From the sequence record MK250021.1: a stretch of DNA of 64,000 nt; one strand, written 5' to 3'. Both the position numbers and the translations under genes were made by a program. Positions 1 through 54,995 of the stretch are shown piece by piece. The stretch's first letter is position 1. The number at the start of each line of letters is the position of its first letter. The notes under the pieces were generated by a model. The model was not told where the DNA came from and made no database searches. It worked only from the letters and a program-made list of their open reading frames with translations.

Positions 1-3000
1 AGTATTTAAATTTTCTTTTGTTTCTATATTTGTAGAATAATTTTCATACTTATAATATGTGTTTAAATTAGCTGGTTTTTCAGTTACTATATTTATATTT
101 GAATTTGGTTCTGTGTCTTTTGCATAAAGTTCAACTTCAATATTTGACTATGCATTATAATATACTGATAATGTATGATTTATATAATTTTTCTAACCTG
201 TATATTGAGAATCTTTAAAATAATTCCAATTTTCATTAAATGATTCATTATTTATAAAATGATTAAATATTGCGGATGTTAAATTTATAGTTATAACTGT
301 ATTACCTTGATTAATATCAGAAATATTATATGAAGAATCTGAATAATTAACAGATAATATGTCATTCGCAGTAGGATAAACAAATTTATTAATTAATATA
401 TAATCATTATGAATAACCATACAGTGTGAACCTAAGAATGATTTATCATCAATTCCTGTTTTATGTCCATCAATACTTATATAATCATTTTCATTAAGAT
501 ATTTACGATAATAATTATTATCCCATGTCGCGCTTAATAATGAACGATTATCTACTAAATAATAATTTTTATTTAATCTCTATAAATTAGTGTCTTCAAA
601 TACTTTATTACCTGGATAATTCTGTATTCTATTAATATTTTTTATTTTTGTATTAGATTGCAATAAATCAACATTAAGAATATCTCGTAATTCATCATCT
701 ATATAAAAATCAACCATATTATTCGTATTAGGTGTAAACCATCCGTAATTAAATTTAATCTAATTAGGTATTGATAATGTAAATATTAATGGATTATATT
801 CTTCTGTATTATGTATTAATTTAACCTCTGCTTTTTCTGGGATAATATATATATCAATATCATTAGTAAATGTATCAACATATCGTTTTAACTTATCCTT
901 CGGTGTTTCTAATGATATTAATTTTGATATATACTTCTTAAAATGTGTTAAATTAGTTCCTGTTATCAATTTCGTGTTAGTTAATAAGTTTGTTTTATCA
1001 TTTTTATATGATATAATAAACTAATCACTATTAAGAATATTTGATAATTTTATATTGTTAACATTATTTACATTATTTTGTTTCTTTATAGTTAATCCTA
1101 ATTTATTTTCATTTAATGTTATTAATTTCGGATTTAATACATTTGTTATATTTAAATGCTAACTTATATTTTTTCCTATAGTTGTAGTACGTCTTATAAC
1201 ATTTTCAAGGATCTATTTAGCTGTATGATTATATTCACCATCTGCCTTTGTAATAATATACGCATGACTATTACTTGATATTGAATTTACATGAGTTAAT
1301 GTACCTGGATAATCAATATACTCATAATTTGTTAATACACCAATATCATTATAATTATTAACAGAAACATATTCATTACAATCAACTGAATTTTCCATAT
1401 TAAATGAAACAAACTATGGTGAATTAGTTGATAATGTTGTATTTACTATCGGTACATCATACTATGTAAATAATGAAGACCATAAATTATGTTCATCTAT
1501 TAATGACATTAATTGTTTATGAAAATTATTCTTCTTATGAGCATGAATACCATTATTCATACAGTTAAGTGTCCTGAAATCAATATCATATGGTGCGTTA
1601 AGAACTGCATAATCAGCATAACTCTAATATTCATTTGTTGTAACATTCTTTATGTTAGATGTGCCTTCATGTGCATAATCAATATAGAACTAATGATTAA
1701 TCAATAAGATGAACCTTTCTTTTAACGATATATAAATCTCATTAGTTTTTGATAAATCATAATCGGTTAAAACAAATGCTTCAAACCCTGAATAATCTTC
1801 AAGATGAATATAACTATTAACAACCTTTGTATTTAACTTAATATTAAATTTAATACCGGAAAATATAAACTCAAGACTTTTAATATTAGAATTATAATAT
1901 ACAGATGCTGTATCAATATTAGTATTATCTATCAATAATTTTTTAATGGAATGCTGTACAGAACCATTTAATATACTTTCCTTATATGTAATTGATTCAT
2001 TATTAATATACAATATATTATCTACTTTATTAGTTACATATTGATTTGTATCATAATCTGCTACATTATAAGTATTTTCACAGAAATTACCATTAAATTC
2101 ATAATTTTCATTTAATGTATTAACATCTAATATGTTATTATTATCATAATATTGTCCATTAGATTTCCATAAACATTGTACAGATGGAACAATAGGATAT
2201 AATAATTCACTATTACCTGTATTATTAGGATTTACAAAATAATTATTTGATTTTAATTCTGGAATTACAGTATCATAATTATATTCCTAATATTTTTGTT
2301 TGTCTGCTATTTTTAATTTAGTATTTTCTATAACAGATATTGAATTCAAATTATTTACGTTTATAGTTGTACTTATATATGCTGTTTTAGAAGGTGTTAT
2401 TATAAATGTCGTTCCTTTAGACACATTTACTTTATTGAATTTAAGTTTACCATCTAAAACTTCATACATCACTCCATGTTGTATTCTATAATCCGTTTCA
2501 TCTGTTGCAATAGTTTCACCTGCCGGAATATCAATATATAAATTATCCTCATTATGTAATGTTCTGCTTAAATCAATAGTTGTATCTATATCTTTAATAT
2601 TAGTAATACCCATTATAGCAACTGCGACTTCTGTAGGTTTATACAAATGAATCTTATTAGTTATTAATAACGAAGGATTAATAGTAGAAATCATGCATGT
2701 ATTTACATCATATGGATTTGTTATTACGCATAAATCCTATGTTTTATTAATAAACTACTATTGATTATCTAAACTATAATTCTTATAATTATCTGGTTCC
2801 CATACATTATTTCTCAAATATCCATTTGTAATATTAAATACATTAACTGTATCATAAATACCATTTGTGTTATAAATTAATGGATACTTAATTTTATTAA
2901 CTAAGTCACTAATATCTGTATTAACAGAATATGTATAATTAAGTTCTTTTGTTGATTTAAACTTAACAACATTATTGTAACGCCAACCTAATGTTTCAAA

Positions 3001-6000
3001 ACAATAATTGGAGAATGCACAATAATAATTATCAAAATAATCTGATTGATTTGTCAATGCATGCATTTCATAAGTTATATTACTATTAAAATATGAAATA
3101 GTATCATCTTTAATATTAACAGGATCTTCTGATTCAACATAACAATGTAAATCACTTATATTATTTAAATAATTATGTTCAGAATTATTATCTATATTCT
3201 TTATCCAATCATTTTCATTATCATCCGGTTGTATATCATTTTCAATATATTTAATACCATTATGTTTAATAAATGAAATACTGTTATTATATTCTTTATT
3301 TGTTGTATATAATGATGATACAAGACCATTTACTTTATCAAATCCAAAATAATCATAATGAAAATCATCAAACTTTGGTGCTAATATATGTTGAACATAC
3401 ATATTATCATATGATGAAATTATAGAAATACTCTTATCATTATAAGATCCAACTTTAATTATATTAGTATTAAATTTCTCAATACATTTTATAATACGAT
3501 TAATCTGTACATCTAATGTTGCAGTTATATCATTATATTCCAAATCCTATGAATAAAATGAAATTCTATAGAAATAAGTATTTTCAGAATATCTACATTT
3601 CTATTTGGCAACATATGGATTTATATTATAATCAGTCTCTAATAATCTATCATCATTTGATGCAATTATTTCATATACAATATGTTCAGTTGTAAACTTA
3701 TTTGTTTCATATGTATTACCAGCATTAGTAACAGAAGATTTAATAGGATAATCCTATGCAATAAATTTAATATGTTCACCACATTCAATAGGTTTATTGA
3801 AATGTAATATTATAAAACTTTTATCAGTATCTTTATCTATCTTAATTTCTGATGAATCTAATGACATTAAATTTGAGTCTGGAGTATTAGTGACATAATT
3901 CTTAAAGAAATTCTTTAAATCAATATCAGTCTAAACTCTACCTACATTATTATTTGTTATTGCGAAGAATAATCTATCATAATATTTCTTATCGAATATT
4001 ACTTTATAAATATTCTCATCTCCTTTATAAATATCACCATTTTCATCATATTTAGTTAATACTGTATTTCCTGTACTATTCTTAGAAGAAACAACATAAC
4101 CATAATTAATGAAATCATTTGCAGTTAAATATAATCCAAAATAACGATGCATAGAATATTCTTCCATATCATTATCATCAAACATAAACTCAAGGTTTAT
4201 AATATTGGAATATATAAGATTATGTCTTTCAAAGCCAGCAATAATATAATTATTAAACATTTCTTGTTTATTAGCTATATCTGAATTTAATATTTTAGAT
4301 CCAAAATATGTTGTCTCTGACTAATTAACAAGAATGCCTCTATCTACTGATATACCTTTCCATATATTATTGCCTTGTCTATAATAAGGAGAATTCTAAT
4401 TATAATCCTGTTCAATAAATTGCAAATAACATTGTCCATAATTAGACAACATATTCTTATAATTATTAAGATATTGTCCAATAGATGTTGTTGTTCTTAA
4501 ATCAAATGTCTTTATAACCTTTGATTCTTTAATTAATTTCTTTAATTTTTCTGTATCATTAATTCCTTCACCTGAATATGTCTCTTCATTAAATATATCG
4601 TCATATCTGAATATCGCGAAGAATTCTGGTACATTATTTCCTATATGTAATGGTGCGAGAATCTTCATATTTTCAGAATAAAGACTATCTGTATTTGTTT
4701 CTGCACCATATTCATACATTGTTTCATATTGATCTTTATAATCAGTATAAACCTTATGTGCTTTCAGAGAATTTTCTGGTAATCCAAATAAATTTTTAAT
4801 AGGAATTTTACTGAATACCTTTTTTATATCTCTTGGATAATTACCATCAGATGAAATAGGGTATTTACGAACATTCTTATTATTTAATACAGCATTAGCT
4901 TTAAATGTATCAAGATATAAGTTATAATCTTTATCTACAACTAATTTAATATTTCCAGATAACTTTGGATTTGCTCTTAATAACATTGATGAATGATGTT
5001 GTGTATTAAGTTCATAACCTTTATTATCATAATTTGTTAGATGCTTTTCATTTTCATCATTAGTAACTATTAATCGTCCGTTTATTTTATTGCTAGATTT
5101 ATCAGTAATAGTTAAAACAATATCTTCTGATGAGCTAATAGGATAATCATCATCTAAACTTATTGTAAATATACCAGGTTCTATCCTATTTTCAAATATA
5201 ATATTATTATCTGTTTTATTTATGAAATCATTAATATGAACACCATTAATTCTTAAATAATTTTTCAAAGCATTATTCTATAATGTTATAATATAATTTG
5301 AAGGAGTTTCTGTTTTTACACGAATATTACTTCCATATACAGATATTTTATTTATAACAGACTATGTATTAATATCAGATATTTTTTTATCTTTTAAAAC
5401 TATCATATCCGGTACTTGTTCTTTTAATTTATCCTAATCAATTATCAACTAATCTGTAATTTTGTCAACATATGAAATTTCTAAATTTGCTTCAATATCT
5501 GTTAAACTTTTATCGGATACTTCTTTTTCTGTATTTGTATAATCATATACATCTGTTAAATAAATATAATTTCCAGATAAAATAGGATATACACCATATC
5601 TAGGAATTTGTTTTGTTAAAGGATTCGCACATTCTTTTGTTTCAATACTATGTCCGTCTTCATCTATGTCTATTTCATAATTATATAATTTTTCATTATT
5701 GTTTATATCGTCATTACCAGTTGCTATTTCATACTTAGGTTTATCTTCATCCGTATTTATTAATACATAACGATGATATATAGCTCTATAAGAACTGTCT
5801 ATACAACTTATACTCTTTTCACCTAATGTTATTAATTTTGTGTTATCAGCTATATTACCATTATTAGGATAATCGTTATTATCTTGGACAGGTACACTAT
5901 AAATTATAGTATCTTTATTATTAATAGTAGTATCATTATACTTATTACATATACGATTACTAAAATTATACATTTCTTTATAATCATTGAAGAATTCGGT

Positions 6001-12764: not shown

Positions 12765-13140
12765 NNNNNNNNNNNNNNNNNNNNNNNNNNNNNNNNNNNN
12801 NNNNNNNNNNNNNNNNNNNNNNNNNNNNNNNNNNNNNNNNNNNNNNNNNNNNNNNNNNNNNNNNNNNNNNNNNNNNNNNNNNNNNNNNNNNNNNNNNNNN
12901 NNNNNNNNNNNNNNNNNNNNNNNNNNNNNNNNNNNNNNNNNNNNNNNNNNNNNNNNNNNNNNNNNNNNNNNNNNNNNNNNNNNNNNNNNNNNNNNNNNNN
13001 NNNNNNNNNNNNNNNNNNNNNNNNNNNNNNNNNNNNNNNNNNNNNNNNNNNNNNNNNNNNNNNNNNNNNNNNNNNNNNNNNNNNNNNNNNNNNNNNNNNN
13101 NNNNNNNNNNNNNNNNNNNNNNNNNNNNNNNNNNNNNNNN
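12765..13140. other. Scaffold gap (376 N)
   Basis: Run of N. Confidence 1.
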
Positions 13141-38298: not shown

Positions 38299-38805
38299 AT
38301 GGATCGTGGTGAACGACGTTATCGTCAAAAGAAAAAGTGGATTTCTCGTTTAAAGAAATTATGGAATTCACATGTATTTTGGAATTATATTTCTCCTGTA
38401 AAGAAAAAGAAACCAAAATGTATTAGAGAAATGAAAGAACATAGAGCTACATCATGGCAAGATTTTACGAAGGATCATTTTGGTGTATTAGTTAAAAATA
38501 CAGGAACTGTTATGACTGATAATAAACGTTTGGATATTACAGAAGAACATAAGAGAAAAATGCAAAACAGAAAACTTACAAAGGAAGATCAAGAAGAAGT
38601 TGATGAATATCTTGATAGAAAAGAACATCCATATAGGTTTGAAGATTTTTGTTGTAATTGTGATAATTTTCCTGGAGATAGATTATATGAATCTAGAGAA
38701 TACGATGGTAAAGATGTTTGTCCATTTGTAGAAAGATTTAAATCTGGTGAATTAAATGGAGATACAGAATGGCAGAAGTTAGGATGTGAAAGTTTTATTG
38801 ATTAA
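38299..38805 (+). CDS. Hypothetical protein
   Basis: Track ORF; C-terminal CCNC...CPF...C. Confidence 0.8.
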   Translation: MDRGERRYRQKKKWISRLKKLWNSHVFWNYISPVKKKKPKCIREMKEHRATSWQDFTKDHFGVLVKNTGTVMTDNKRLDITEEHKRKMQNRKLTKEDQEEVDEYLDRKEHPYRFEDFCCNCDNFPGDRLYESREYDGKDVCPFVERFKSGELNGDTEWQKLGCESFID

Positions 38806-38903
38806 TTAAATATTATTATAGGTGATTAGCAAATTATAGTTAATCACCTATAACTTTTTATATATTTTCTTATATAATCTTTAACTAATAATATTTTTAA
38901 TTT

Positions 38904-40625
38904 ATGACAATGATGAAAACAGATATTGAAATTTCGCAGAGTGCACAACTTCAAAGTATTGATTATGTATTTGAAAAACTTGTTCCTTATGATGATCGTA
39001 TAAAAAATGGATATATTGAGCAGTACGGTAATTATATGGGTAAAATTCCATTGACATATTTAAAATCAGGAATGGAATGTGCAAATAAACATCTTATTCT
39101 TGTAACTTCAATTAGTCCTACTAAATCTGGTATTGGTAAGACAACTGTAAGTGTAGGATTGAATGATGCACTTAAGAAATTAAAGAAAAATTCCATTGCG
39201 GTATTGAGAGAACCTTCTCTTGGACCATGTTTTGGTATGAAAGGAGGCGCATGTGGAGGTGGTTATTCACAAGTAGTACCAATGGATAAGATTAATCTTC
39301 ATTTCACGGGAGATTTTCATGCAATTACAACAGCAAATAATATGATTGCTTCTGCAATCGATAATTATTTCTATCATAATCCAGAAAAAGAATTAGATAT
39401 AAAGAAAATTACATTTAGACGCTGTTTAGATATTAATGATAGGTCTCTTAGAACTATTTACACAACACAGCGATATGGAAAACTTATTCAAACAGGATTT
39501 GATATTACGCCAGCATCAGAAATGATGGCAATTTTTTGCATGGCATATGATATAGATGATTTACGTAAACGTATTGATAAAATTATCATTGCAGAGCGAG
39601 AAGATGGTAGTTTTATGTATTGTAAAGAATTAGGAATAACCGGTTCAATTGTTGCATTGTTATCAGATGCGATTAAACCTAATTTAGTACAGAGTCTTTA
39701 TAATAATCCTGTTATTATTCATGGTGGTCCATTCGCTAATATTGCACATGGTTGTAATTCAGTTATCGCAACACGTATGGGATTGTCATTATGCGATTAT
39801 GTTGTAACAGAAGCAGGATTCGGTTCAGACCTTGGTGCTGAAAAATTCATTGATATTAAATGTAGAACTGCAGGTTTTTCACCAGATGTTATTGTATTGG
39901 TTGTGGCTATTCCAGGTTTGAAAAATCAAGGTGGTTGTAAAGATATAACAAAGGAAGATACAAGATCACTTGAGATAGGACTCAAGAACCTTGATCAACA
40001 TTTGAATGCACTTAATACATTTGGTTATAAGATTATTGTCACTAATAATGTATATGATACAGATACGCGAAATGAACAGATAATTCTTGAGAATTTCTGT
40101 AAGAGTAGAAAGGTAAAGTGTATTAAGAATACATGCTATGTAGATGGTAGAGATGGAGCATTAAATTTAGCACAAGAAGTTATTGATACCATTGATAATA
40201 CGAAGCATATAGCATTTCCAAATTGGGCATATCAAAAATATGATAATATAAAAGATAAGATTTCAGATCTTTGTGAAAATATTTATGGTATAAATTCAGA
40301 TAATATACGTTATTCATATAAGGCTGAAAAGTTTATTGAGAAATATGATAAGACATATGAGAATTATAAGGATGAATTAATTCAGGAAATTAGTGAATAT
40401 CCTATTTGTATGGCAAAGACACAATATTCATTTTCAGATAATCCATCAGTATTGCCAGTGCCAACACATGATACTACATTTACTATTGATGAAATTAAAA
40501 TTAATAGAGGTGCTGGATTTTTAGTTGTTATTGCAGGTAATATGATGCGAATGCCTGGTTTACCAAAAGAACCAGCAGCAAAGAAAATAGATTATGTTGA
40601 TGGAAAAATTACAGGATTGAATTAA
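38904..40625 (+). CDS. fhs: Formate-tetrahydrofolate ligase
   Basis: SPTKSGIGKTT, LREPSLGP, KGGACGGGYSQV, HGGPFANIAHG, TEAGFGSDLGAEKF, MPGLPKEPAA. Confidence 0.97.
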   Translation: MTMMKTDIEISQSAQLQSIDYVFEKLVPYDDRIKNGYIEQYGNYMGKIPLTYLKSGMECANKHLILVTSISPTKSGIGKTTVSVGLNDALKKLKKNSIAVLREPSLGPCFGMKGGACGGGYSQVVPMDKINLHFTGDFHAITTANNMIASAIDNYFYHNPEKELDIKKITFRRCLDINDRSLRTIYTTQRYGKLIQTGFDITPASEMMAIFCMAYDIDDLRKRIDKIIIAEREDGSFMYCKELGITGSIVALLSDAIKPNLVQSLYNNPVIIHGGPFANIAHGCNSVIATRMGLSLCDYVVTEAGFGSDLGAEKFIDIKCRTAGFSPDVIVLVVAIPGLKNQGGCKDITKEDTRSLEIGLKNLDQHLNALNTFGYKIIVTNNVYDTDTRNEQIILENFCKSRKVKCIKNTCYVDGRDGALNLAQEVIDTIDNTKHIAFPNWAYQKYDNIKDKISDLCENIYGINSDNIRYSYKAEKFIEKYDKTYENYKDELIQEISEYPICMAKTQYSFSDNPSVLPVPTHDTTFTIDEIKINRGAGFLVVIAGNMMRMPGLPKEPAAKKIDYVDGKITGLN

Positions 40626-41710
40626 TGAATGATAAAATAATAGATATAAATGAGTGGTTGAGATGGGTGATTTCCTTACACTCATCTCAAAAACAAATTA
40701 ATACCATAAAACCATATTGGAAATGTAAATCTATGGGAGATTATCTTAAAGTTTTTAAAAACGATATAGGAAAATTTGGTAAGACTATACCGGATATTAA
40801 TGATACTGAATGGATAGATGGTAAATATTCATGGGAGTTAGATAGATTATTTGATATATATAAATTTGTTCCTAATTGTGAACAACTCGCAAAGGTTAAT
40901 ATAGGATATTTTGTATTAAAAGAAACATTAGACAATGATAAATGGAAATATTATATTCAAGTGATAAAACAATATGATAAAGAAGTGAAAGATTATAAAG
41001 GTGGTCCATTTACATTTAGAATTATAATGGTAGACTTTGGTATTTTTAAATTATACGCACGTCAAACAAGAGAATTAGAAGGTGACCATAAACATGTAAT
41101 GTATTCTAATATTAAAAATAAAGAATTAGAGGAACAAAATAAGTTTATTGAATGCTGGAGTGATGATCAATGTATATTCATATCTATACCAGGACTAAAA
41201 ATCAATAAAGATTTAATAAAAGGTAAATCTCAAAAAATTGAATTACAAAAAGAAAAACGTTTATATTGTTTTAATGATAATAATGGAAACAAATATCAAT
41301 TACCAGAATTATATTATCCTACAAATATAAGAACATTTATTGATTATTGTATAGATAAAAAAATATTACCATTTTCAAAAACTGTTAGAATTTGGTCTAA
41401 AACTGATTATTATGAGATATATTCAGACCCTGAAAATAAATCGTTCAAAGATTATATGTCAGAGGACGAAATGTTATATCGTTATCCATTTCCTATGATG
41501 AATATTAAATCAAAAAAAGAAATAAAAGAATATATTAATGATAGGAAGCAAAAACATGCATGGGAAATAAATCGAGGTTTACCAAAAACAGTTACAATAA
41601 ATTATAATATAAATGATATATTCGTACCTATTGATTCAATTACGCAAGATATATGTAATGAATTTATATATAAGATGAATAATAGTAAATTATATGAAAT
41701 AATACAATGA
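40625..41710 (+). CDS. Hypothetical protein
   Basis: Track ORF coupled to fhs. Confidence 0.8.
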   Translation: MNDKIIDINEWLRWVISLHSSQKQINTIKPYWKCKSMGDYLKVFKNDIGKFGKTIPDINDTEWIDGKYSWELDRLFDIYKFVPNCEQLAKVNIGYFVLKETLDNDKWKYYIQVIKQYDKEVKDYKGGPFTFRIIMVDFGIFKLYARQTRELEGDHKHVMYSNIKNKELEEQNKFIECWSDDQCIFISIPGLKINKDLIKGKSQKIELQKEKRLYCFNDNNGNKYQLPELYYPTNIRTFIDYCIDKKILPFSKTVRIWSKTDYYEIYSDPENKSFKDYMSEDEMLYRYPFPMMNIKSKKEIKEYINDRKQKHAWEINRGLPKTVTINYNINDIFVPIDSITQDICNEFIYKMNNSKLYEIIQ

Positions 41711-42201
41711 ATAAGGAATTACAACAATATATACATAAAGCAGATAATTCTCAAAATATAAAGTATTTTGAGAATATGATGAATGCTTTATATAATAAAG
41801 CATATGAATATCGTAAATTAAGAGATGAAGCAATTATATCTAATAAAGATTTGAGAGGAAAATATGTAAGGTTATCAAAAGAACGAGATTATGATAATCC
41901 AGTATATATGCATGTAGTTAATCAGTTCGTTACAAATGATGGTGGTAGAGATAGATACCAAGTATATCTTGAAGGATTAACATTTAGATATAGTGATGCA
42001 ACTATATATTTGGATAATATATGGCAAGAAGTAGATGGATGTAGACAAATTCATTATGATATTCATGAATTTGAAAATCTTCAAGTTAAATATTTAACAG
42101 AAGGAGAATTCAGAAAGTTATATATGGAAATGGTTAGTAATATGGTATCTATTTATGAACATGCAGAAAAGTTAATAAATAATAAAATTTCATCAAAATA
42201 A
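41707..42201 (+). CDS. Hypothetical protein
   Basis: Track ORF, ATGA overlap. Confidence 0.8.
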   Translation: MNKELQQYIHKADNSQNIKYFENMMNALYNKAYEYRKLRDEAIISNKDLRGKYVRLSKERDYDNPVYMHVVNQFVTNDGGRDRYQVYLEGLTFRYSDATIYLDNIWQEVDGCRQIHYDIHEFENLQVKYLTEGEFRKLYMEMVSNMVSIYEHAEKLINNKISSK

Positions 42202-42344
42202 TTTTAGACTTTATTAATATAATTATATATAAAATACATAACGAATGTTAATTATAAGTTAAGTTATTTTAATTATTAAAATTAAAATTAAAAATATTTT
42301 AGACTTTTTTAACATTCTTATGTAAAATATACATAAGATTTTAA

Positions 42345-42755
42345 ATGATTGAATTTCTATATAAAGGACAAAAATGTTTTACTAATAATCTTCCGAAGAA
42401 ATTAAAGAGAATGAAGATTACAGAGAATGATATTGAAATCCTTAGAGAATTTGATGAAACACAGAAGAAAGTAAAACCAGAAGATAATAACAATGAATTT
42501 GATAATTGGACTAAAGTTGTATATTGGGATCCTATTACAAATTATACACATATTGGTTTTACACATGGTATGAATAAACCTGATAAAAATGAATTTTTTA
42601 AAAATTCTAAATGGAATGAAGAAACAAAAACAGGGTTAAAATATTGTACTAAAGAATGGATTGATAATGTTGTTTTGTTAAATGGAATACCTAAATATCC
42701 TATTGTAATAGGTGATGATGGTAAACCTGTGTTAGAAACAAAATATAATTGGTAA
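42345..42755 (+). CDS. Hypothetical protein
   Basis: Track ORF. Confidence 0.8.
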   Translation: MIEFLYKGQKCFTNNLPKKLKRMKITENDIEILREFDETQKKVKPEDNNNEFDNWTKVVYWDPITNYTHIGFTHGMNKPDKNEFFKNSKWNEETKTGLKYCTKEWIDNVVLLNGIPKYPIVIGDDGKPVLETKYNW

Positions 42756-42761
42756 TTATTA

Positions 42762-43523
42762 ATGTCTAAAGATGATTTAGTAAATATACAAGAACAACCA
42801 GGAATTTATATGATTTAGAATGATATAAATAAAAAATGTTATATAGGCTAGAGTATAAATTTACATACAAGATTGTTACATCATATAAATAATTCTATAA
42901 ATAATCGTTATAATGCACCAATATATAGAGCATTTAAAAAATATGGTATAGAAAATTTTTCTGTATATATTTTAAAAAAATTTGATAATCCTATAACTAC
43001 ATATATTAAAGAATAGTTAGATATTTATGAGAAGAAATATATTAATGAATATAATAGTTATGGAAGCACGGGATATAATCAAACAAAAGGTGGTGATGGA
43101 GGTATAGATGGATATAAATTTACTAAAGAACAAAAATTAACAATTTCTAAAAATTCGTATAAAATATAGAATGATGGTAGAAATACAATATATTGTTATG
43201 ATATAAAAAATAATAAATTTATTGAATCAACATCATTATAGGAATTAAAACGATAGTTAAATGTTAATTTTAGAACAGGATGTATTAGAAATTTATTAAT
43301 ATATAATCAATATATTTTATCACGTTCAAAAGATGATTTATTATAGAAAATTAATAAGTATAATAATAAATTATAGGAGTATAATACAAATGGTTGTAGT
43401 AAATTAACTCATGAAATGAAAGATGATATAATTAATAATATATCAGAAAAAGAATTTCTTAGTAAATATAATGTATGTAAATCTACATATTATCATTATA
43501 AAGAAAAATTAAATATATCTTAA
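42762..43523 (+). CDS. GIY-YIG homing endonuclease, 253 aa; code 15
   Basis: PGIYMIQN..KCYIGQS..R, KYGIENF, EKKYI, GYNQTKGG; about 8 TAG; absent from track. Confidence 0.9.
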
Positions 43524-43546
43524 TTGCGTGTATTAAGATATAGTAT

Positions 43547-43618
43547 TGGGGATTAGTATAGTGGTCAGTACAGAGGTCTCTAAAACCTTTAGGCCGAGTT
43601 CGAGTCTCGGATCCCCAA
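43547..43618 (+). tRNA. Amber suppressor tRNA (anticodon CTA), Gln-type
   Basis: TGGGGAT/ATCCCCA acceptor, loop ctCTAaa (43580-82), T arm ccgag-ttcgagt-ctcgg. Confidence 0.95.
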
Positions 43619-43660
43619 CAATTAAATGACATAAGTAATATTTTAAAGATTTGATGAATT

Positions 43661-43945
43661 ATGAAGCAGAAGACAATTATTAAGACAGAATATTACGCAG
43701 ATGATGGTAGAGTATTTAATAATGAGAATGATTGTAAGTTATATGAGGATAAAGTGAAAATTCCAAAGATTGGATTATACTCGGTTATTGATAAGTATGA
43801 CGCTAAATCAGTTGTTAATTATATAGATTTGATTTTAGGACAATATAATGTTATTGGAGATTCATATATTAGAGATACTAAAATTAAAAATATGTTAACA
43901 CATCTTCAAAAACAATTTTCTAGTTATTTACCGGATGAAAAGTAA
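43661..43945 (+). CDS. Hypothetical protein
   Basis: Track ORF. Confidence 0.75.
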   Translation: MKQKTIIKTEYYADDGRVFNNENDCKLYEDKVKIPKIGLYSVIDKYDAKSVVNYIDLILGQYNVIGDSYIRDTKIKNMLTHLQKQFSSYLPDEK

Positions 43946-43991
43946 TATATAAGATGTCTTATTCTATTAAAAATAATAGTGAGATGATTTA

Positions 43992-44210
43992 ATGAATAAG
44001 GAAGATATATTGAAGAATGAATATACAGAAATTGCAGACTTAGCAACAAGAATGATTAATAATGCAAAAGAAGCAGAAGCATTATATAATGAAGTAAAGA
44101 GAATTAATAGTATGCAATTAATAGAAGATAATTTATTTAACCTTCAATTTGTAATGAATTGGCAGGATATTTTGAATAAGGTATCTATTACACAGGTTGA
44201 AGATTGTTAA
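43992..44210 (+). CDS. Hypothetical protein
   Basis: Track ORF. Confidence 0.7.
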   Translation: MNKEDILKNEYTEIADLATRMINNAKEAEALYNEVKRINSMQLIEDNLFNLQFVMNWQDILNKVSITQVEDC

Positions 44211-44217
44211 GAAATAT

Positions 44218-44251
44218 AAAGTCGAGATTATTTTTTAGTCTCGACTTTTTT
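44218..44251 (+). terminator. Intrinsic terminator
   Basis: aaagtcgaga/tctcgacttt plus T run. Confidence 0.75.
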
Positions 44252-44268
44252 AATTAAAATATTTTATG

Positions 44269-44276
44269 TATCTTTG
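44269..44276 (+). promoter_or_regulatory. Bacteroidota sigmaA -7 element
   Basis: TATCTTTG before 44304. Confidence 0.7.
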
Positions 44277-44303
44277 AATTGTTAAATATAAAAATAGAAT
44301 TTT

Positions 44304-45104
44304 ATGAAAGCTAAATCATATATATTTGTACATAATAAAGAAAAATCTACATATAATATTCCAGACGAATATTTTGTAGATAATACAAATCTTAGAATAA
44401 CTCATTTTAATACAGAAAATAGTTATTTTAATATATCTGCATATGGATTTCTTATTAAGAAAGATATTTTTGATAAAGAATGTAAATCATTTTATACATT
44501 AAATCCTGTATCTAAATATACAAATGGTAATATTAATGGAAGACGCATTGCATTTGTAAAAATTAATAAAGAATTACCAAAATATGATTTAACAGGAAAT
44601 GCTATTAAAAGTTCTTTATCTTCAGATAATTGGACAGTTGTAAATGTTATAGATAATACATCAAGATGGACAAGAATTCCAGATGATTGTTATTTACTTA
44701 CACCAAAGTTTAAATCAAGTGGACTTAAAATTCGGTGTTTTGAAAAAGAAGAAGATGCTATTGCTGAATATAATAAAAATGAAGAGAAAAAATCAGCAAA
44801 TAAAAAAGCAAAATGGAACGCAATAAATACGGCGCCAAATAATGGTAATATCAATTTAGCAACACTTAAATATAAAGTTGAACGAATTCATATAAAGACA
44901 AATTATTTGAAGGATGTTCATGAAGGTGATATTATATATGGCGTTATTTCTGTATTAGAGAATGGTAAGAATAAACTTAATGTATCATCTCATTATGCAA
45001 ATTATGTAGATGTATATGTTAATGATAAATTATATAAAACAGTTCCCATGAATGTATTTGGAGATTTACTTTCAAAACATTTACAATTATCTGTTTTTGT
45101 TTAA
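44304..45104 (+). CDS. Hypothetical protein
   Basis: Track ORF. Confidence 0.8.
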   Translation: MKAKSYIFVHNKEKSTYNIPDEYFVDNTNLRITHFNTENSYFNISAYGFLIKKDIFDKECKSFYTLNPVSKYTNGNINGRRIAFVKINKELPKYDLTGNAIKSSLSSDNWTVVNVIDNTSRWTRIPDDCYLLTPKFKSSGLKIRCFEKEEDAIAEYNKNEEKKSANKKAKWNAINTAPNNGNINLATLKYKVERIHIKTNYLKDVHEGDIIYGVISVLENGKNKLNVSSHYANYVDVYVNDKLYKTVPMNVFGDLLSKHLQLSVFV

Positions 45105-45130
45105 TTAATAATCTTAAAAATAATTTTAAT

Positions 45131-45433
45131 ATGAAATTTTCAACATATATTAATAATATAATAGATGCAATATTTTTTCCGAATTTTCTTATTGAAGAAC
45201 GGGAAGATAATAAGAAATTAAATGAATCATATGAAAATTATATCAAATCAGTTAATGATTATGGTGATTCAGGATGGAAAGAAGCAACTAAATATGCGAA
45301 GTTAGTAGATAATTTAAGTTATCAACTAGATGTATTAGCAAGGGATTATAAGAATTTAACAAATATAAATAGAGATTTAAAAAGAAAATTAGAACGGTAT
45401 TATAAAACAGGAAAAAATTCTAAGAAAAAGTAA
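45131..45433 (+). CDS. Hypothetical coiled-coil protein
   Basis: Track ORF. Confidence 0.7.
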   Translation: MKFSTYINNIIDAIFFPNFLIEEREDNKKLNESYENYIKSVNDYGDSGWKEATKYAKLVDNLSYQLDVLARDYKNLTNINRDLKRKLERYYKTGKNSKKK

Positions 45434-45474: not shown

Positions 45475-45881
45475 GGGGATGAATTTGGATTTGCTTATTA
45501 ATTATGTGGTAATAAATCGTGTAGGAAAGTTAATAGCCTTTTGTAGTAATACAAAGAAACTTAGCAAATAAATTTAAATGACGACGAAATAGAATTTCGT
45601 ATGGCAGCTTAATCCTGATAGGATTGGTAATATACACCCATTGAAGCATTTGCTCCTTATACGGTAAGTTTGAGCATTGCCACGGAGTTCGTAAGAGTGA
45701 TAATCTCTGTTAAATAAAACTCTTACATATACTTATTCATTGTCCAATAAGAGTGATTATGACATTAAACTGTTTAACTCTAATAACACAGATATAAATG
45801 AAAACTAATAAAGACATACGCACGTAGATAGTTTATTATTGACATGTTAGTAATACGTGGTTTCGAGTACCACCATCTCCA
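45475..45881 (+). ncRNA. ssrA: tmRNA
   Basis: GGGGATG/CATCTCC acceptor with G3.U70, GGATTTG, T arm gtggt-ttcgagt-accac, tag ORF 45580-45612 DDEIEFRMAA-TAA. Confidence 0.92.
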
Positions 45882-46020
45882 CATTTTTAGATTATATTTC
45901 ATAATATAGAATTTTTAATTGTTTAATTTTGTAAATGAGTTGTATGTTTAGATAAACATATGACTCATTTTTTTGTATAATAATAAATAAGATAATAAAA
46001 CTAAATATAAGCATAAATAT

Positions 46021-52014: not shown

Positions 52015-52087
52015 GGTCCGTCTGGTGTAATTGGTAACATGACAGATTGTGGTTCTGTTGTTCAGGGTTCGAGCCCCTAACGTGACC
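52015..52087 (+). tRNA. tRNA-His(GTG), irregular acceptor stem
   Basis: acaga-ttGTGgt-tctgt; G-1:C73. Confidence 0.8.
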
Positions 52088-52106
52088 CAAAATATTATTA
52101 ATATTT

Positions 52107-52183
52107 AGCGTAGTGGCCCAGTTGGTCTAAGGCACCTGTTTTGGGAACAGGTTAGATCGCACGTTCGAATCGTGTCTACGCTA
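52107..52183 (+). tRNA. tRNA-Pro(TGG)
   Basis: agcgtag/ctacgct; cctgt-ttTGGga-acagg. Confidence 0.92.
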
Positions 52184-52297
52184 CAGAATAGAGTTCTTAT
52201 GTTATCCTTACATAACTAAAAGAACTAAAACTTAAGATGGTAAGGCATCTATATAATGGAAGTTCACGCCCAAGGGAAGATTTATAAGTTATAATTT

Positions 52298-52372
52298 ACT
52301 CTGTTAACTCAATTGGATTAGAGTATTTCGCTACGAACGAAAAGGTTGTGAGTTCGATTCTTACACAGAGTA
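52298..52372 (+). tRNA. tRNA-Arg(ACG)
   Basis: actctgt/acagagt; tttcg-ctACGaa-cgaaa. Confidence 0.92.
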
Positions 52373-52381
52373 CAAGTAAAT

Positions 52382-52454
52382 ATCTCTATAGCTCAAAAGA
52401 ATAGAGCAGTTCTCTCCTAAAGAACAGATAACAGTTTGATTCTGTTTGGAGATA
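52382..52454 (+). tRNA. tRNA-Arg(CCT)
   Basis: atctcta/tggagat; gttct-ctCCTaa-agaac; T loop TTTGATT. Confidence 0.85.
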
Positions 52455-52541
52455 CAAACAAAATTAACATTATTAATATAGACTTTTATCTATTAATTGA
52501 ATATATTATAATGTAATTTGAATTTTAAATACTATTAAAAT

Positions 52542-52950
52542 GTAGGGGAGTAGAGTTCCCATCATTTAAAGAGTTTCGAGAAGAAGGTATTGTATGTAAA
52601 AGCATTAAGTTTCGTTTAGCTGACGAAATGTGACCACGCGGTGATGGTATTCATGTACATAGGTCCATCCGTATAACTTCAGGGAATCGTAAGCATTAAT
52701 CTTGGCGAGTACAGTTTTTAGTCTGAAATGACGAATTTTCCTACTGGTTGCTCAATATGATATTAAGAGTCGGAGATAATTATTTGTAAGTTCCACAATT
52801 ACGAGAGGAAAATGGAATTAAGTTGAAGGAATAACGTGATTATTCTTGGTGTGATTAGGAGAACGAAAATAACCAGTATGTATGGTGTACGTGTGCATAC
52901 AGAAACAAAGCAAATAATAGCCCTTAGAGAATTTGCCGAGTAAAGGACAT
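52542..52950 (+). ncRNA. Unidentified structured non-coding region
   Basis: GC-richer, several hairpins, closing stem 52542-49/52737-44. Confidence 0.45.
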
Positions 52951-52971
52951 TAATAGTATTTTTATTTATTT

Positions 52972-53049
52972 GCAGTATTGGTGTAGCTGGAGGCGCATTC
53001 CTGACTTCCACTCAGGCGGCTTGCGCGAGTTCGATTCTCGCATACTGCT
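52972..53049 (+). tRNA. tRNA-Gly(TCC)
   Basis: gcagtat/atactgc; cctga-ctTCCac-tcagg; U73. Confidence 0.92.
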
Positions 53050-53123
53050 CATAATAAGGTAGAGTATCAATGAATGATAGAGAATAAGTTCCTGTCTGAG
53101 ATCAACCTATCTGTAGTATTTAG

Positions 53124-53149
53124 ATAATTTTATGTATACATAAAATTAT
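53124..53149. repeat. Perfect 26-bp palindrome
   Basis: ataattttatgta|tacataaaattat. Confidence 0.9.
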
Positions 53150-53258
53150 AACGAAGTTTATATTACCTGTAGTCGTAATATTCAAATCGTTCGTTGACAT
53201 AGTTATTCCGTGATGTAGTAGAGAGTTATAATCAGCATATAACAGACGGAATATTTTT

Positions 53259-53331
53259 GCGGAAGTATATCAATGGTTAGATAGATACGTTGCCAACGTA
53301 TAGGTTGTGAGTTCGAGTCTCATTTTCCGCT
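53259..53331 (+). tRNA. tRNA-Gly(GCC)
   Basis: gcggaag/tttccgc; atacg-ttGCCaa-cgtat; U73. Confidence 0.92.
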
Positions 53332-53474
53332 CTATAAACGTTTCGAGGTTTTAAAGTTGAATGTACCACCTTGCGCTTGTGTTACTATTCACCTTTGAGT
53401 AATAGTAAAAAACTTATGGTATCAAGGATGTTTTCTACGTTGTTACATCCATTTTTTTGAATATGATAGAATAT

Positions 53475-53621
53475 GAGAGTCAATACAGCAAATTAAATTG
53501 ATAGATAATGTTTGAAGATTATACACAAAAAGACTCTTGAATCAAATTATAATGGGAGGCAATACAGCAAATTTTGTATTAAGGATTATTTTGCTAAAAT
53601 AATATTCTATACGCCTCCTGA
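53475..53621 (+). repeat. Two tandem structured AATACAGCAAATT elements
   Basis: 13-nt identical core, different but self-complementary closing stems, each followed by TGA. Confidence 0.75.
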
Positions 53622-53626
53622 TACTT

Positions 53627-53710
53627 GACGAGTTGCTGAGAATTGGTTAATCGCACGATCTGCAAAATCGTTGGTCATATGACATGTCGGTTCGAGTCCG
53701 ACACTCGTCT
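53627..53710 (+). tRNA. tRNA-Cys(GCA) with long variable arm
   Basis: gacgagt/actcgtc; acgat-ctGCAaa-atcgt; 14-nt variable region; U73. Confidence 0.88.
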
Positions 53711-53743
53711 CTTTAGATTAATATTTTAAAATACTATTATAAG

Positions 53744-54004
53744 ATGAAGAAATTATTTTCTTTTATATTTTGTACAATAATGATTACATCATTATTTGGA
53801 TGTGCAACAAAACAAGATACAATTAGTTACCTTGATAATTATGTACATAAAAATATTTCTGAAAATTGTATAAACATTTTCAGTAATCAAAGATATAATG
53901 AATATATTGATACTGTTACTAATATTAAATATTATGTTTATATAGATTATAATAGTAACATCAATATAATAGATAAAAGATTTCCGAGGTATACAGCTCG
54001 TTAA
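53744..54004 (+). CDS. Small putative lipoprotein
   Basis: MKKLFSFIF...LFGC lipobox-like. Confidence 0.65.
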   Translation: MKKLFSFIFCTIMITSLFGCATKQDTISYLDNYVHKNISENCINIFSNQRYNEYIDTVTNIKYYVYIDYNSNINIIDKRFPRYTAR

Positions 54005-54302
54005 AAGAGGTTGACTTGTATATTCTACATTACCTACTGTATAACAATATATGAGTGTACATGTGAAAAGATACACCATGTTCTATTAATATAAAAATGT
54101 ACATATATAGGGTAACAATTATATTAATATCAGATGCATGACATATATGAATATAATAACGAATTCGTGAAATGACTATTGTTTTTAGTTGCTTGGAAAC
54201 GGCGAACTTAGTTTTATCAATAGAGGAAGTATAATATTAAAACAGTTAAATGTAAATCTTTCTGAGACAATGGGGACAACTTGTAGTAAGAGAGTATTTT
54301 TA

Positions 54303-54417
54303 GCTAGTATAGTTTAGTGGCAAAACACCCAAATCCCAGGGATAAGAGATGGTTTGAGTTGTAGTGTACAATACAATATACAGAAGATTTTAGTGAGTTC
54401 GATTCTCACTGCTAGCT
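54303..54417 (+). ncRNA. tRNA-like RNA with expanded anticodon/variable region
   Basis: Acceptor gctagta/tgctagc, D arm and T arm intact; ~65 nt between D and T arms. Confidence 0.7.
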
Positions 54418-54423
54418 CAATAT

Positions 54424-54551
54424 GAAGTGCGTAGTTTAAATGGTAAAACATCCTTTGAGTAGGACTCTGACGAGAGATAGATAACAATGCTAGACTCTAT
54501 TTAATTCCATTGTTTTATTAATGAGTATAGGTTCGAATCCTATGGTACTTC
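54424..54551 (+). ncRNA. tRNA-like RNA with multi-stem insert replacing anticodon arm
   Basis: gaagtgc/gtacttc, D arm and T arm atagg-ttcgaat-cctat intact; ~76-nt insert. Confidence 0.7.
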
Positions 54552-54841
54552 CAAATTTATATAGATAAAAAGATTCTGGTGATTAGATAAAACATTATAA
54601 GAAAAGAGAAAAAACTTAGGTAACTGCAGATAACTAAGGGTCGTAAGAGTATATGAAGAAAGATGAACTATGGATACCTCCTTATAATGCGTTTTATCAA
54701 TAATTAAAGTAGTCTATAATATAAGTTCATTAACGTTATAGAAAAAACGAATATTGATAAGTCTACTATGCAGATGGGGCATTGAGAATGCCGTATAGTT
54801 CTAAAGCATCGTAAAACAGTTTATTTATATATTTTTAATAT

Positions 54842-54916
54842 GGCTAGATAGCTCAGTTCGGTTAGAGCGCGTGATTCATATCCACGAGGTCGTGTGTTCG
54901 ATCCACACTCTTGCTA
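54842..54916 (+). tRNA. tRNA-Met or Ile2 (CAT)
   Basis: ggctaga/tcttgct; loop ttCATat; T arm gtgtg-ttcgatc-cacac. Confidence 0.85.
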
Positions 54917-54995
54917 CAGTGTTTTTAGTTGTTTATTAATGATTTGAGATATATCAATTTTTGGTATATCTCTTTTTTATTTAGAAAATAATTTG

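Follow-up and report, generated by a model that had tools for sequence, protein, structure and literature searches.

Free-standing GIY-YIG homing endonucleases associated with tRNA genes are best known from phage T4, where SegB is encoded in the tRNA cluster, and its documented effect is the preferential inheritance of the endonuclease together with neighbouring tRNA genes (Brok-Volchanskaya 2008, PMC2330249). The SegB site includes the conserved T-psi-C motif, SegB-driven amplification of a tRNA segment is also published, and SegB homologs are generally enriched near tRNA genes, with no isotype preference (Chihara 2026, PMC13096335). Separately, Lak megaphages and crAss-like phages are known to use code 15 with a suppressor tRNA(CUA) (Devoto 2019; Crisci 2021; Yutin 2021; Borges 2021 preprint). 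The reading of TAG as glutamine, the RF2 gene and the use of TAG in late genes have all been described, and Borges noted a recoded intron endonuclease in Agate phages and suggested that in-frame stops delay its production. None of these papers mentions an endonuclease next to the suppressor, a cassette, or endonuclease-plus and endonuclease-minus alleles (neither 'homing' nor 'GIY' occurs in Devoto, Crisci and Yutin), and full-text searches for GIY-YIG together with suppressor tRNA found nothing relevant.

We analyzed a 64,000-nt stretch (the window) of the 550-kb genome of Prevotella phage Lak-B2 (MK250021.1), in which a GIY-YIG endonuclease gene containing in-frame TAG codons precedes an amber-suppressor tRNA. 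The locus resembles that of SegB in that the free-standing GIY-YIG gene lies next to a tRNA gene and in that related phages lack the endonuclease and carry different tRNA content at the locus. However, the two proteins are related only in the catalytic domain (33% identity over about 100 aa, residues 16-116; E = 1e-8; hhalign probability 97%), whereas their C-terminal halves gave no significant match, thus we rejected orthology with SegB. In addition, the partner in Lak-B2 is specifically a stop-codon suppressor rather than a tRNA of any isotype, the block replaces an essential resident allele, and the endonuclease gene is itself written in the altered code. We consider it probable, though with only moderate confidence, that the region is a two-gene selfish cassette of the Seg/I-TevI type whose cargo is the code-changing tRNA; cleavage, homing and charging are inferred from sequence comparisons.

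The endonuclease gene and the adjacent tRNA(CUA)

The sequence-only reading had described an amber-suppressor tRNA of glutamine type, lying apart from the main tRNA cluster and 23 nt downstream of a GIY-YIG endonuclease gene that depends on it, and had proposed that the endonuclease could spread the recoding locus between phages as SegB spreads a tRNA region. The description was confirmed in every detail, and each interpretive claim was supported as far as sequence can test it, the comparative evidence being stronger than could have been known from the window alone. The features of the locus are listed in the table.

Features of the endonuclease-tRNA(CUA) locus in the Lak-B2 window
Feature	Coordinates	Strand	Size	Description
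Upstream flanking ORF	42345-42755	+	136 aa	No TAG, no known family; stop codon abuts the block
Block present or absent as a unit	42756-43632	+	877 bp	Endonuclease + tRNA; 406 bp in Lak-B1/B3/B6/B9
GIY-YIG homing endonuclease gene	42762-43523	+	253 codons	Free-standing, I-TevI/Seg-type; TAA stop
In-frame TAG codons	42816-18, 42849-51, 43014-16, 43167-69, 43239-41, 43254-56, 43344-46, 43374-76	+	8 codons	Codons 19, 30, 85, 136, 160, 165, 195 and 205
Spacer	43524-43546	+	23 nt	30 nt in Lak-A1
Amber-suppressor tRNA (type 2)	43547-43619	+		ARAGORN; Rfam RF00005 match spans 43547-43618; no encoded CCA
Anticodon CUA	43580-43582	+		
Downstream flanking ORF	43661-43945	+	94 aa	No TAG, no known family; used to anchor related loci
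Terminator-like hairpin	44218-44248			
TAG-free block	38299-45433			The endonuclease gene is its only TAG user
tRNA cluster of the window	52015-54917			8.4 kb downstream of the tRNA(CUA)

The endonuclease ORF is open only if TAG is read through, and under table 11 it breaks into fragments. Its product was assigned to the GIY-YIG family by Pfam PF01541 (34.4 bits against a cut-off of 22.6, E = 2.8e-8), by NCBIfam TIGR01453 'group I intron endonuclease' (65.6 bits against 56.05, residues 14-234) and by PHROG matches to homing endonucleases; the family profile matches the I-TevI catalytic domain (1mk0, E = 5e-12, I-TevI residues 3-90). The GIY and YIG motifs occupy residues 14-16 and 27-29. In an alignment of 30 family members, G14, Y16, Y27, G29, R37, H41, E90 and N106 are invariant, R37, E90 and N106 being the equivalents of I-TevI Arg27, Glu75 and Asn90, although the exact register at the glutamate was not resolved from the profile alignment. 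DNA-binding modules are detectable in family members (HTH_28 in 8, NUMOD1 in 7 and HTH_17 in 4 of 30), while no Pfam hit to such a domain was obtained for the Lak-B2 protein itself. Unlike intron-encoded members of the TIGR01453 subfamily, the gene is not inside an intron, but lies between an ORF and a tRNA.

Eight of the 13 glutamine positions of the endonuclease are encoded by TAG, a density of 3.16 per 100 codons that falls at the 97th percentile of 483 genome ORFs. The TAG in the YIG-TAG-S motif (codon 30) occupies a column that is an invariant glutamine in the 30 family members and a real CAA or CAG codon in 7 of 8 TAG-free homologs checked; the TAG at codon 136 aligns with CAG in one homolog. 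Between the Lak-B2 and Lak-A1 orthologs, TAG and CAA interchange at three positions and five TAG positions are shared. These observations are in line with the published assignment of TAG to glutamine in Lak phages (PMC6784885, PMC8346664); published alignments give Q in 75-85% of cases. On these grounds we rejected the idea that the ORF is a pseudogene broken by real stops.

The tRNA folds as a cloverleaf (Rfam 61.7 bits against a cut-off of 29) with the acceptor stem U1-A72, G2-C71, G3-C70, G4-C69, G5-C68, A6-U67, U7-A66, and with G10, A at position 38 and discriminator A73. It is listed as 'Sup CTA 415547-415618' in Table S2 of Devoto 2019. It is the only CUA tRNA in the Lak-B2 genome and lies about 280 kb from the largest tRNA cluster (genome positions 125-134 kb). 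Among the 33 tRNAs of the phage, its nearest relative is the phage's own tRNA-Gln(CUG) at 73% identity, followed by tRNA-Glu at 68%, and it shares its D-arm and 4-nt variable loop with tRNA-Gln(UUG); the discriminator A73 differs from the G73 of E. coli tRNA-Gln, although both phage tRNA-Gln genes also have A73. The margin is small, and U1-A72/G2/G3 is not unique to glutamine in this phage, being found also in tRNA-Ile(AAU) and tRNA-Ile(GAU). The copy in Lak-A1 is 95% identical, and the four differences form two compensatory pairs in the anticodon stem (28-42 and 29-41). The genome contains one release factor and no PF00749 synthetase; since the phage encodes no GlnRS/GluRS-type enzyme, the tRNA is presumably charged by the glutamine system of the host. 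About 200 Lak-B2 genes depend on the reading of UAG as glutamine. Given the first TAG at codon 19 and a single suppressor gene, we infer that the endonuclease needs the adjacent tRNA for its own translation.

Alternative alleles at the locus in Lak genomes

The same gene pair recurs in Lak-A and Lak-C genomes and in other phages, and so is not a chance arrangement. By comparing Lak genomes, we distinguished three arrangements: (i) endonuclease followed by type-2 tRNA in Lak-B2/B4/B5/B7/B8, (ii) a different, type-1 tRNA(CUA) with a 245-nt insert in Lak-B1/B3/B6/B9, and (iii) type-1 tRNA, endonuclease and type-2 tRNA in Lak-A1/A2/C1. The type-2 tRNA is absent from Lak-B1 and Lak-B3. Megablast and blastn break points delimit the block sharply, and homology between the alleles resumes 14 nt after the tRNA. 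Both Lak-B alleles also appear in independent run assemblies: a contig in one run joins 42755 to 43633 with 406 other letters between, and a contig in another run of the same study crosses the left junction into the endonuclease gene.

Default ARAGORN and Rfam searches found no tRNA in the Lak-B1 allele, and Devoto 2019 lists no Sup-CTA for Lak-B1/B3/B6/B9. The intron mode of ARAGORN identified a split tRNA with the anticodon CGA, a call that we rejected, since the exon and intron ends (U before the cut, G at the intron end) and the intron-less relatives place the cut one base later, giving CUA. The insert is group-I-like: the 5' exon ends in CUCU, facing GGAG 7 nt into the insert, and the insert ends in G. 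It scores below the curated cut-off of Rfam RF00028 (15.7 bits against 50, E = 0.11), although the R and S core elements align with high posterior probability. A 74%-identical homolog lies at the same anticodon-loop position of a different tRNA(CUA) in the crAss-like genome cr115_1, and of 55 predicted pairs 13 are doubly compensated and none is broken. Thus, Lak-B1/B3/B6/B9 and cr115_1, which appear to lack an amber suppressor, do carry one, split by a probable intron that standard tRNA finders and the RefSeq annotation miss. The endonuclease and the intron have so far been seen on different alleles, not side by side.

Despite this polymorphism, the endonuclease gene in Lak looks like an old, vertically inherited resident. 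It has diverged in step with its neighbours since the A/B split (dS 0.78, against 0.5-1.0 for the neighbours) and is under purifying selection (dN/dS 0.23 against Lak-A1), which suggests long residence and possibly domestication, not a recent invasion. The nuclease might therefore be kept for the benefit of the phage, either disabling the suppressor gene of competing recoded phages (exclusion) or driving local amplification or repair around the tRNA, as reported for SegB, with TAG dependence as a timing device. The shared TAG positions and a TAG density typical of late genes in an otherwise TAG-free block are in favor of this possibility. However, two Lak-type copies carry premature stops (a TGA at codon 87 in Lak-C1 and a stop at codon 184 in another locus), a decay typical of the homing-endonuclease life cycle, and four of nine baboon genomes lack the gene altogether while being otherwise 96-99.8% identical locally, so it is dispensable. 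We regard domestication as unlikely, although it overlaps with homing rather than excluding it.

The Lak copy could also be an inactive relic, with the B1/B2 polymorphism arising by deletion and general homologous recombination among co-circulating strains. Extensive admixture among the nine baboon Lak genomes is published, so ordinary recombination could shuffle these alleles, a caveat that applies to the cassette reading as well. The flanks of the B1 and B2 allele groups show 0 differences over 40200-41733 and about 37 over 41734-42755, the latter in patches rather than in a simple co-conversion gradient, and the downstream flank is nearly identical. No RNA run was found that holds the locus. 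On the other hand, all catalytic-motif residues are intact, the ORF is intact in B2, B5, B7, A1 and A2, and the same block replacement recurs independently in crAss-like phages (see below). Therefore, this explanation appears the least likely of those considered.

Association of the endonuclease family with tRNA(CUA) genes in other phages

To examine the linkage across the family, we took the 80 best relatives from IMG/VR and two Logan contigs. In about 45 of the 48 loci whose match extends beyond the catalytic core, mostly crAss-like, a tRNA(CUA) ends 15-32 nt before the endonuclease start codon, whereas among the roughly 31 loci that match only the core, one has a CUA tRNA nearby. In 6 of 6 loci with several tRNAs, the endonuclease sits directly after the CUA tRNA. 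Rfam confirmed 9 of 9 of these tRNAs, and RefSeq annotates 'tRNA-Gln' followed by 'homing endonuclease' in cr4_1 and cr6_1. The orientation differs from that in Lak-B2, where the linked tRNA is downstream of the endonuclease.

In an unbiased, terminase-anchored sample of 75 crAss-like loci, 46 have a tRNA(CUA) alone, 20 have a tRNA(CUA) plus endonuclease, and 0 have the endonuclease without the tRNA. The tRNA alleles beginning with UGGGG or UGGAG carry the endonuclease in 18 of 18 loci, while all other alleles do so in 2 of 48 (Fisher p = 2.8e-14, not corrected for shared ancestry); the Lak type-2 tRNA belongs to the UGGGG class. Some type-1-like (UGCCC) tRNAs are also endonuclease-linked, including those of Lak-A, so the split into resident and cassette tRNA classes is not clean. 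Six endonuclease-plus/minus pairs with 93-98% identical flanks were identified, and in each of them the differing block is exactly the alternative tRNA plus endonuclease versus the resident tRNA, with break points at the tRNA edges. The distribution is patchy: at least 14 changes of state are needed on the terminase tree, 12 of them forced by well-supported branches, and two loci with identical 890-nt terminase segments differ in endonuclease presence.

These data bear on a simpler possibility, that a Seg-type endonuclease recognizing a generic tRNA feature, such as the T-psi-C arm, lands beside tRNA genes of any kind, its position next to the suppressor being incidental and the tRNA not part of a mobile unit. 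The lack of isotype preference among SegB homologs is in line with this possibility, and several more distant GIY-YIG genes in our sample lie inside ordinary tRNA arrays. However, the neighbour in this family is predominantly a CUA tRNA, endonuclease-plus and endonuclease-minus alleles carry different tRNA(CUA) sequences in every pair examined, and the tRNA allele class predicts endonuclease presence. Simple insertion beside a resident tRNA does not predict this, and thus we consider an incidental association unlikely.

A possible homing cassette carrying a suppressor tRNA

Based on these comparisons, we propose that when a phage carrying the cassette and a phage lacking it infect the same cell, the endonuclease cuts the other genome in or beside its resident suppressor-tRNA gene, and repair then copies the endonuclease gene together with its linked tRNA(CUA) allele, which is presumably resistant to cutting. 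The recipient's suppressor would be replaced rather than lost, so that TAG decoding survives and the selfish element is hitched to an essential gene. In the Lak lineage the endonuclease gene has itself acquired 8-11 TAG codons; by inference, it can be translated only once the suppressor it travels with has accumulated, that is, late, like the structural genes, and it brings its own decoder wherever it goes. Stop-codon recoding in phages is thought to time late gene expression, and such a cassette would offer a concrete route for the spread of the code change as well as explain the many alternative tRNA(CUA) alleles found at one locus. The family would also provide natural site-specific nucleases with a predicted target, the suppressor tRNA genes.

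More tentatively, it can be speculated that the suppressor locus of TAG-recoded gut phages is a shared target for selfish elements, including free-standing GIY-YIG cassettes with their own suppressor allele and group I introns, with or without an HNH gene, inserted between CUCU and A of the anticodon loop, and that these elements move suppressor tRNA genes horizontally between unrelated phage families (Crassvirales and Lak megaphages). Endonuclease-driven spread of a ready-made decoder would then help explain why code 15 has arisen repeatedly, and over short evolutionary distances, in gut phages, and intron-split suppressors would explain part of the recoded genomes without a detectable suppressor.

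Scans of the Lak-B2 locus for sigma-70 and Bacteroidetes-type promoters gave no more than chance. Rfam found no ribozyme of the theta (HDV-like) kind after the tRNA, in the window or in nine related loci, although the family may not be represented in Rfam; the 41-nt spacer after the tRNA is AT-rich. Finally, Lak-B2 contains only one other, weak GIY-YIG paralog, so the endonuclease is not a multi-copy family within this genome.

The tRNA(CUA) and endonuclease genes of Lak-B2

The analyzed window corresponds to genome positions 372001-436000 of Prevotella phage Lak-B2 (MK250021.1, 549,839 bp, baboon feces). The sequence-only reading described an amber-suppressor tRNA of the glutamine type directly downstream of an amber-dependent GIY-YIG endonuclease gene, and proposed that the endonuclease could spread the recoding locus between phages. 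All described elements are present, and this interpretation is supported as far as sequence comparison can take it. A tRNA with anticodon CUA was called by both ARAGORN and Rfam (61.7 bits against a cut-off of 29) and folds as a cloverleaf, with an acceptor stem of U1-A72, G2-C71, G3-C70, G4-C69, G5-C68, A6-U67 and U7-A66, G10 and the discriminator A73. The endonuclease frame is open only when TAG is read through, whereas under the standard code only fragments appear. Its product, P0001, is a GIY-YIG nuclease according to Pfam (E = 2.8e-8), the NCBIfam TIGR01453 'group I intron endonuclease' model (65.6 bits against 56), PHROGs (homing endonucleases), and a family profile that matches the I-TevI catalytic domain at E = 5e-12. 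The gap between the stop codon and the tRNA is 23 nt.

Coordinates of the features at the Lak-B2 locus and in related sequences
Feature	Sequence	Position	Strand	Details
GIY-YIG endonuclease gene (product P0001)	window	42762-43523	+	253 codons; 8 TAG codons, the first at codon 19
Type-2 tRNA(CUA)	window	43547-43619	+	
Block replaced in Lak-B1, B3, B6 and B9	window	42756-43632		877 bp, replaced by 406 bp
TAG-free block with the endonuclease as its only TAG-using gene	window	38299-45433		
tmRNA-like RNA	window	45475-45884	+	
Match to the tRNA model	window	54303-54417	+	115 nt
Segment identical between the allele groups	window	40200-41733		
Segment with SNP patches between the allele groups	window	41734-42755		patches at 42227-42383 for B1 and 42423-42511 for B7
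Masked run	window	12765-13140		376 N
tRNA with anticodon UUA	Lak-B2 genome, outside the window	346127-346199		
Type-1 tRNA(CUA) with insert	L001 (Lak-B1)	2637-2954		245-nt insert; the same in Lak-B3, B6 and B9, L035 and L036
tRNA(CUA) with insert	L212 (crAss-like cr115_1, NC_055898.1)	1460-1760		228-nt insert
Type-1 tRNA(CUA) with insert	L198 (crAss-like IMG/VR contig)	1484-2558		1002-nt insert
Endonuclease copy with premature stop	L003 (Lak-C1)	3602-4372		TTA to TGA at codon 87
Endonuclease copy with premature stop	L041 (Lak-type contig)	4001-4780		stop at codon 184

A census of the whole Lak-B2 genome identified 33 tRNAs, of which only the tRNA at this locus has anticodon CUA. The census also includes one UUA tRNA (ochre-suppressor-like), a tRNA-Gln(UUG) and a tRNA-Gln(CUG). 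A UUA tRNA is reported as universal in Lak genomes, with no evidence that TAA is recoded. The CUA tRNA is closest to the phage's own tRNA-Gln(CUG), at 73% identity, followed by tRNA-Glu at 68%, and it shares its D-arm and short variable loop with tRNA-Gln(UUG). Both tRNA-Gln genes also have U1-A72 and A73; however, the acceptor alone does not settle identity, because two tRNA-Ile genes of the phage start the same way. The protein evidence is stronger. In an alignment of 30 family members the residue after YIG is an invariant Gln, which is encoded by CAA or CAG in 7 of 8 homologs that contain no TAG at all, whereas Lak-B2 and Lak-A1 have TAG there. In addition, TAG interchanges with CAA, a two-base change, at three positions between the Lak-B2 and Lak-A1 orthologs. 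These observations are in line with the published assignment of code 15 to Lak phages, and this very tRNA is listed as 'Sup CTA 415547-415618' in Table S2 of Devoto 2019. The tRNA is under structural selection; its four differences from the Lak-A1 copy are two compensatory pair changes in the anticodon stem. The genome encodes no GlnRS/GluRS-type synthetase, thus charging presumably relies on the host.

All motif residues that are invariant in the endonuclease family are present in P0001 (G14, Y16, Y27, G29, R37, H41, E90, N106). Eight of the 13 Gln codons in its gene are TAG, and the TAG density of 3.16 per 100 codons is at the 97th percentile of 483 ORFs in the genome. Without suppression the product would be 18 residues long, therefore its dependence on the neighboring tRNA is a safe inference. 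The surrounding TAG-free block ends at a tmRNA-like gene and the TAG-rich T4-type portal gene. The tmRNA-like RNA, located 1.9 kb downstream of the suppressor, scores 47.3 bits with Rfam RF00023 against a cut-off of 47, and 54 bits in Lak-A1, although ARAGORN finds no tmRNA and the Lak papers that we searched do not mention it.

Block polymorphism of the locus among Lak genomes

Three arrangements of the locus exist among the 15 published Lak genomes: (i) the endonuclease followed by the type-2 tRNA in Lak-B2, B4, B5, B7 and B8; (ii) a type-1 tRNA(CUA), the endonuclease and a type-2 tRNA(CUA) in Lak-A1, A2 and C1; and (iii) a type-1 tRNA split by an insert, with neither the endonuclease nor the type-2 tRNA, in Lak-B1, B3, B6 and B9. 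In the third group, the flanks of the replaced block are 96.4% identical upstream and 99.8% identical downstream, and the type-2 tRNA is absent from the whole of Lak-B1 and Lak-B3. Both B alleles were independently confirmed in public run assemblies, where one contig joins 42755 to 43633 with 406 other letters between, and a contig from a sister sample crosses from the upstream ORF into the endonuclease gene. In a run from another study (about 92% identity), compared with window 41700-45200, one contig has the B1-type left junction and another starts at 43544 and includes a type-2 tRNA, whereas no endonuclease sequence appears at 90% identity or more, which may represent a fourth arrangement of the locus. 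The SNPs that separate the allele groups in and before the upstream ORF form patches, a recombination mosaic next to the cassette and not a clean gradient.

Between Lak-B2 and Lak-A1 the endonuclease gene has dS = 0.78 and dN/dS = 0.23, while its neighbors have dS of 0.5-1.0 and dN/dS of 0.25-0.67, and five TAG positions are shared. Therefore, the gene has been present in Lak genomes since before the A/B split and is constrained. Nevertheless, it is dispensable, as four B genomes lack it, and it decays in places, with premature stops in Lak-C1 and in another Lak-type contig (L041), where the flanking suppressor tRNAs stay intact. This mix of persistence, loss and decay fits a homing element kept active by the continued availability of endonuclease-free alleles, but it also fits partial domestication, and the two are not separated by sequence alone. 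We infer that the endonuclease cuts endonuclease-free genomes in or beside the resident suppressor gene, and that repair copies the endonuclease gene together with its linked, presumably resistant, tRNA(CUA), so that the essential decoding function is replaced and not destroyed. In Lak phages, TAG codons in the endonuclease gene would delay its translation until the suppressor is active, and the cassette carries its own decoder.

Association of the endonuclease family with tRNA(CUA) genes in other phages

A word-based protein search identified 133 relatives. Two relatives of about 51-53% identity lie on unrelated contigs and contain no TAG, and each is located directly after a tRNA(CUA). We further scanned IMG/VR with the family alignment and retained the 80 best loci. 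Among the 48 loci whose match extends past the catalytic core, about 45 have a tRNA(CUA) ending 15-32 nt before the endonuclease start, whereas among about 31 loci matching only the core, one has a CUA tRNA anywhere nearby. Where several tRNAs are present, the endonuclease follows the CUA one in 6 of 6 cases, and the tRNAs were confirmed by Rfam in 9 of 9 loci checked. Most of these loci belong to crAss-like phages of the family Suoliviridae. In the RefSeq records cr4_1 and cr6_1 the pair is annotated as 'tRNA-Gln' and 'homing endonuclease' just upstream of the terminase gene, which itself uses in-frame TAG. These endonuclease genes have no in-frame TAG; amber dependence is a Lak peculiarity.

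To obtain an unbiased sample, we anchored the analysis on the terminase gene instead of the endonuclease. Among 75 crAss-like loci, 46 have a tRNA(CUA) alone, 20 have a tRNA(CUA) plus endonuclease, 9 have neither by ARAGORN, and none has the endonuclease alone. The tRNA alleles beginning UGGGG or UGGAG carry the endonuclease in 18 of 18 loci, while all other alleles do so in 2 of 48 (Fisher's p = 2.8e-14). This value is not corrected for ancestry, but at least five distinct cassette lineages are involved. The Lak type-2 tRNA belongs to the UGGGG class. In six pairs of genomes with 93-98% identical flanks, the only structural difference is a different tRNA plus the endonuclease (about 0.9-1.07 kb) against the resident tRNA (74-85 bp), and homology breaks at the first bases of the tRNA and resumes at its end. 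On a tree of the adjacent terminase segment, endonuclease presence requires at least 14 changes, 12 of them forced by well-supported branches, compared with 17 on average for shuffled labels, and two loci with identical terminase segments differ in endonuclease presence. This is the pattern expected of an actively moving element that takes its tRNA with it.

The closest analog in behavior is T4 SegB, which lies in the T4 tRNA cluster, recognizes a T-psi-C motif and drives inheritance of its tRNA region. SegB homologs are reported to be enriched near tRNAs with no isotype preference. P0001 is not a SegB ortholog, as only the catalytic domain aligns, at 33% identity, and by family models it is I-TevI-like. 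The suppressor tRNA, the reading of TAG as Gln and late-gene recoding in Lak and crAss-like phages are all published. In contrast, within the incomplete literature that we could search, no paper links an endonuclease to the suppressor, and we consider the specificity of the cassette for suppressor tRNAs, the allele replacement and the amber-dependent nuclease to be the features that are new relative to previously known systems of this kind.

Inserts in suppressor tRNA genes

The 406 bp that replace the endonuclease block in Lak-B1, B3, B6 and B9 contain a different tRNA (type 1, with an acceptor beginning UGCCCUA), which is found by ARAGORN only in intron mode. We place the cut after CUCU, so that the upstream exon ends in U facing GGAG in the insert, the insert ends in G, and the spliced anticodon loop reads CUCUAAA, giving anticodon CUA. 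No Sup-CTA is listed by Devoto 2019 for exactly these four genomes. This split gene is their only candidate amber suppressor and appears to have been overlooked; TAG decoding in these phages would depend on splicing. The first ~27 bases of the widespread type-1 tRNA(CUA) are nearly the same in Lak-B1 and in crAss-like endonuclease-free alleles. It can only be speculated that this tRNA is a candidate target, and that an insert in its anticodon loop, or the sequence changes seen in the Lak-A1 copy, could confer immunity.

The group-I-like insert of Lak-B1 scores only 15.7 bits (E = 0.11) against the Rfam group I model, although the conserved R and S core elements align well. It has a 74%-identical homolog in crAss-like cr115_1, just upstream of the terminase gene, at the same CUCU|A point but inside a tRNA(CUA) with quite different exons, which is not annotated in RefSeq. 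Comparison of the two inserts showed that 13 of 55 predicted pairs are doubly compensated and none is broken. In a third crAss-like locus (L198), a type-1 tRNA(CUA) is split at the same point by an insert that encodes an HNH endonuclease (Pfam PF01844, 22.2 bits) and gave no group I hit with Rfam. The spliced Lak-B1 tRNA is 81-84% identical to crAss-like type-1 alleles, but only 73% identical to the type-1 tRNA of Lak-A. Together, these observations tentatively suggest that suppressor tRNA genes and their parasites move between phage families that share Bacteroidales hosts. Finally, a further match to the tRNA model in the window (37.5 bits) is missed by ARAGORN and is listed by Devoto 2019 as a tRNA-Gly(CCC) with an intron.
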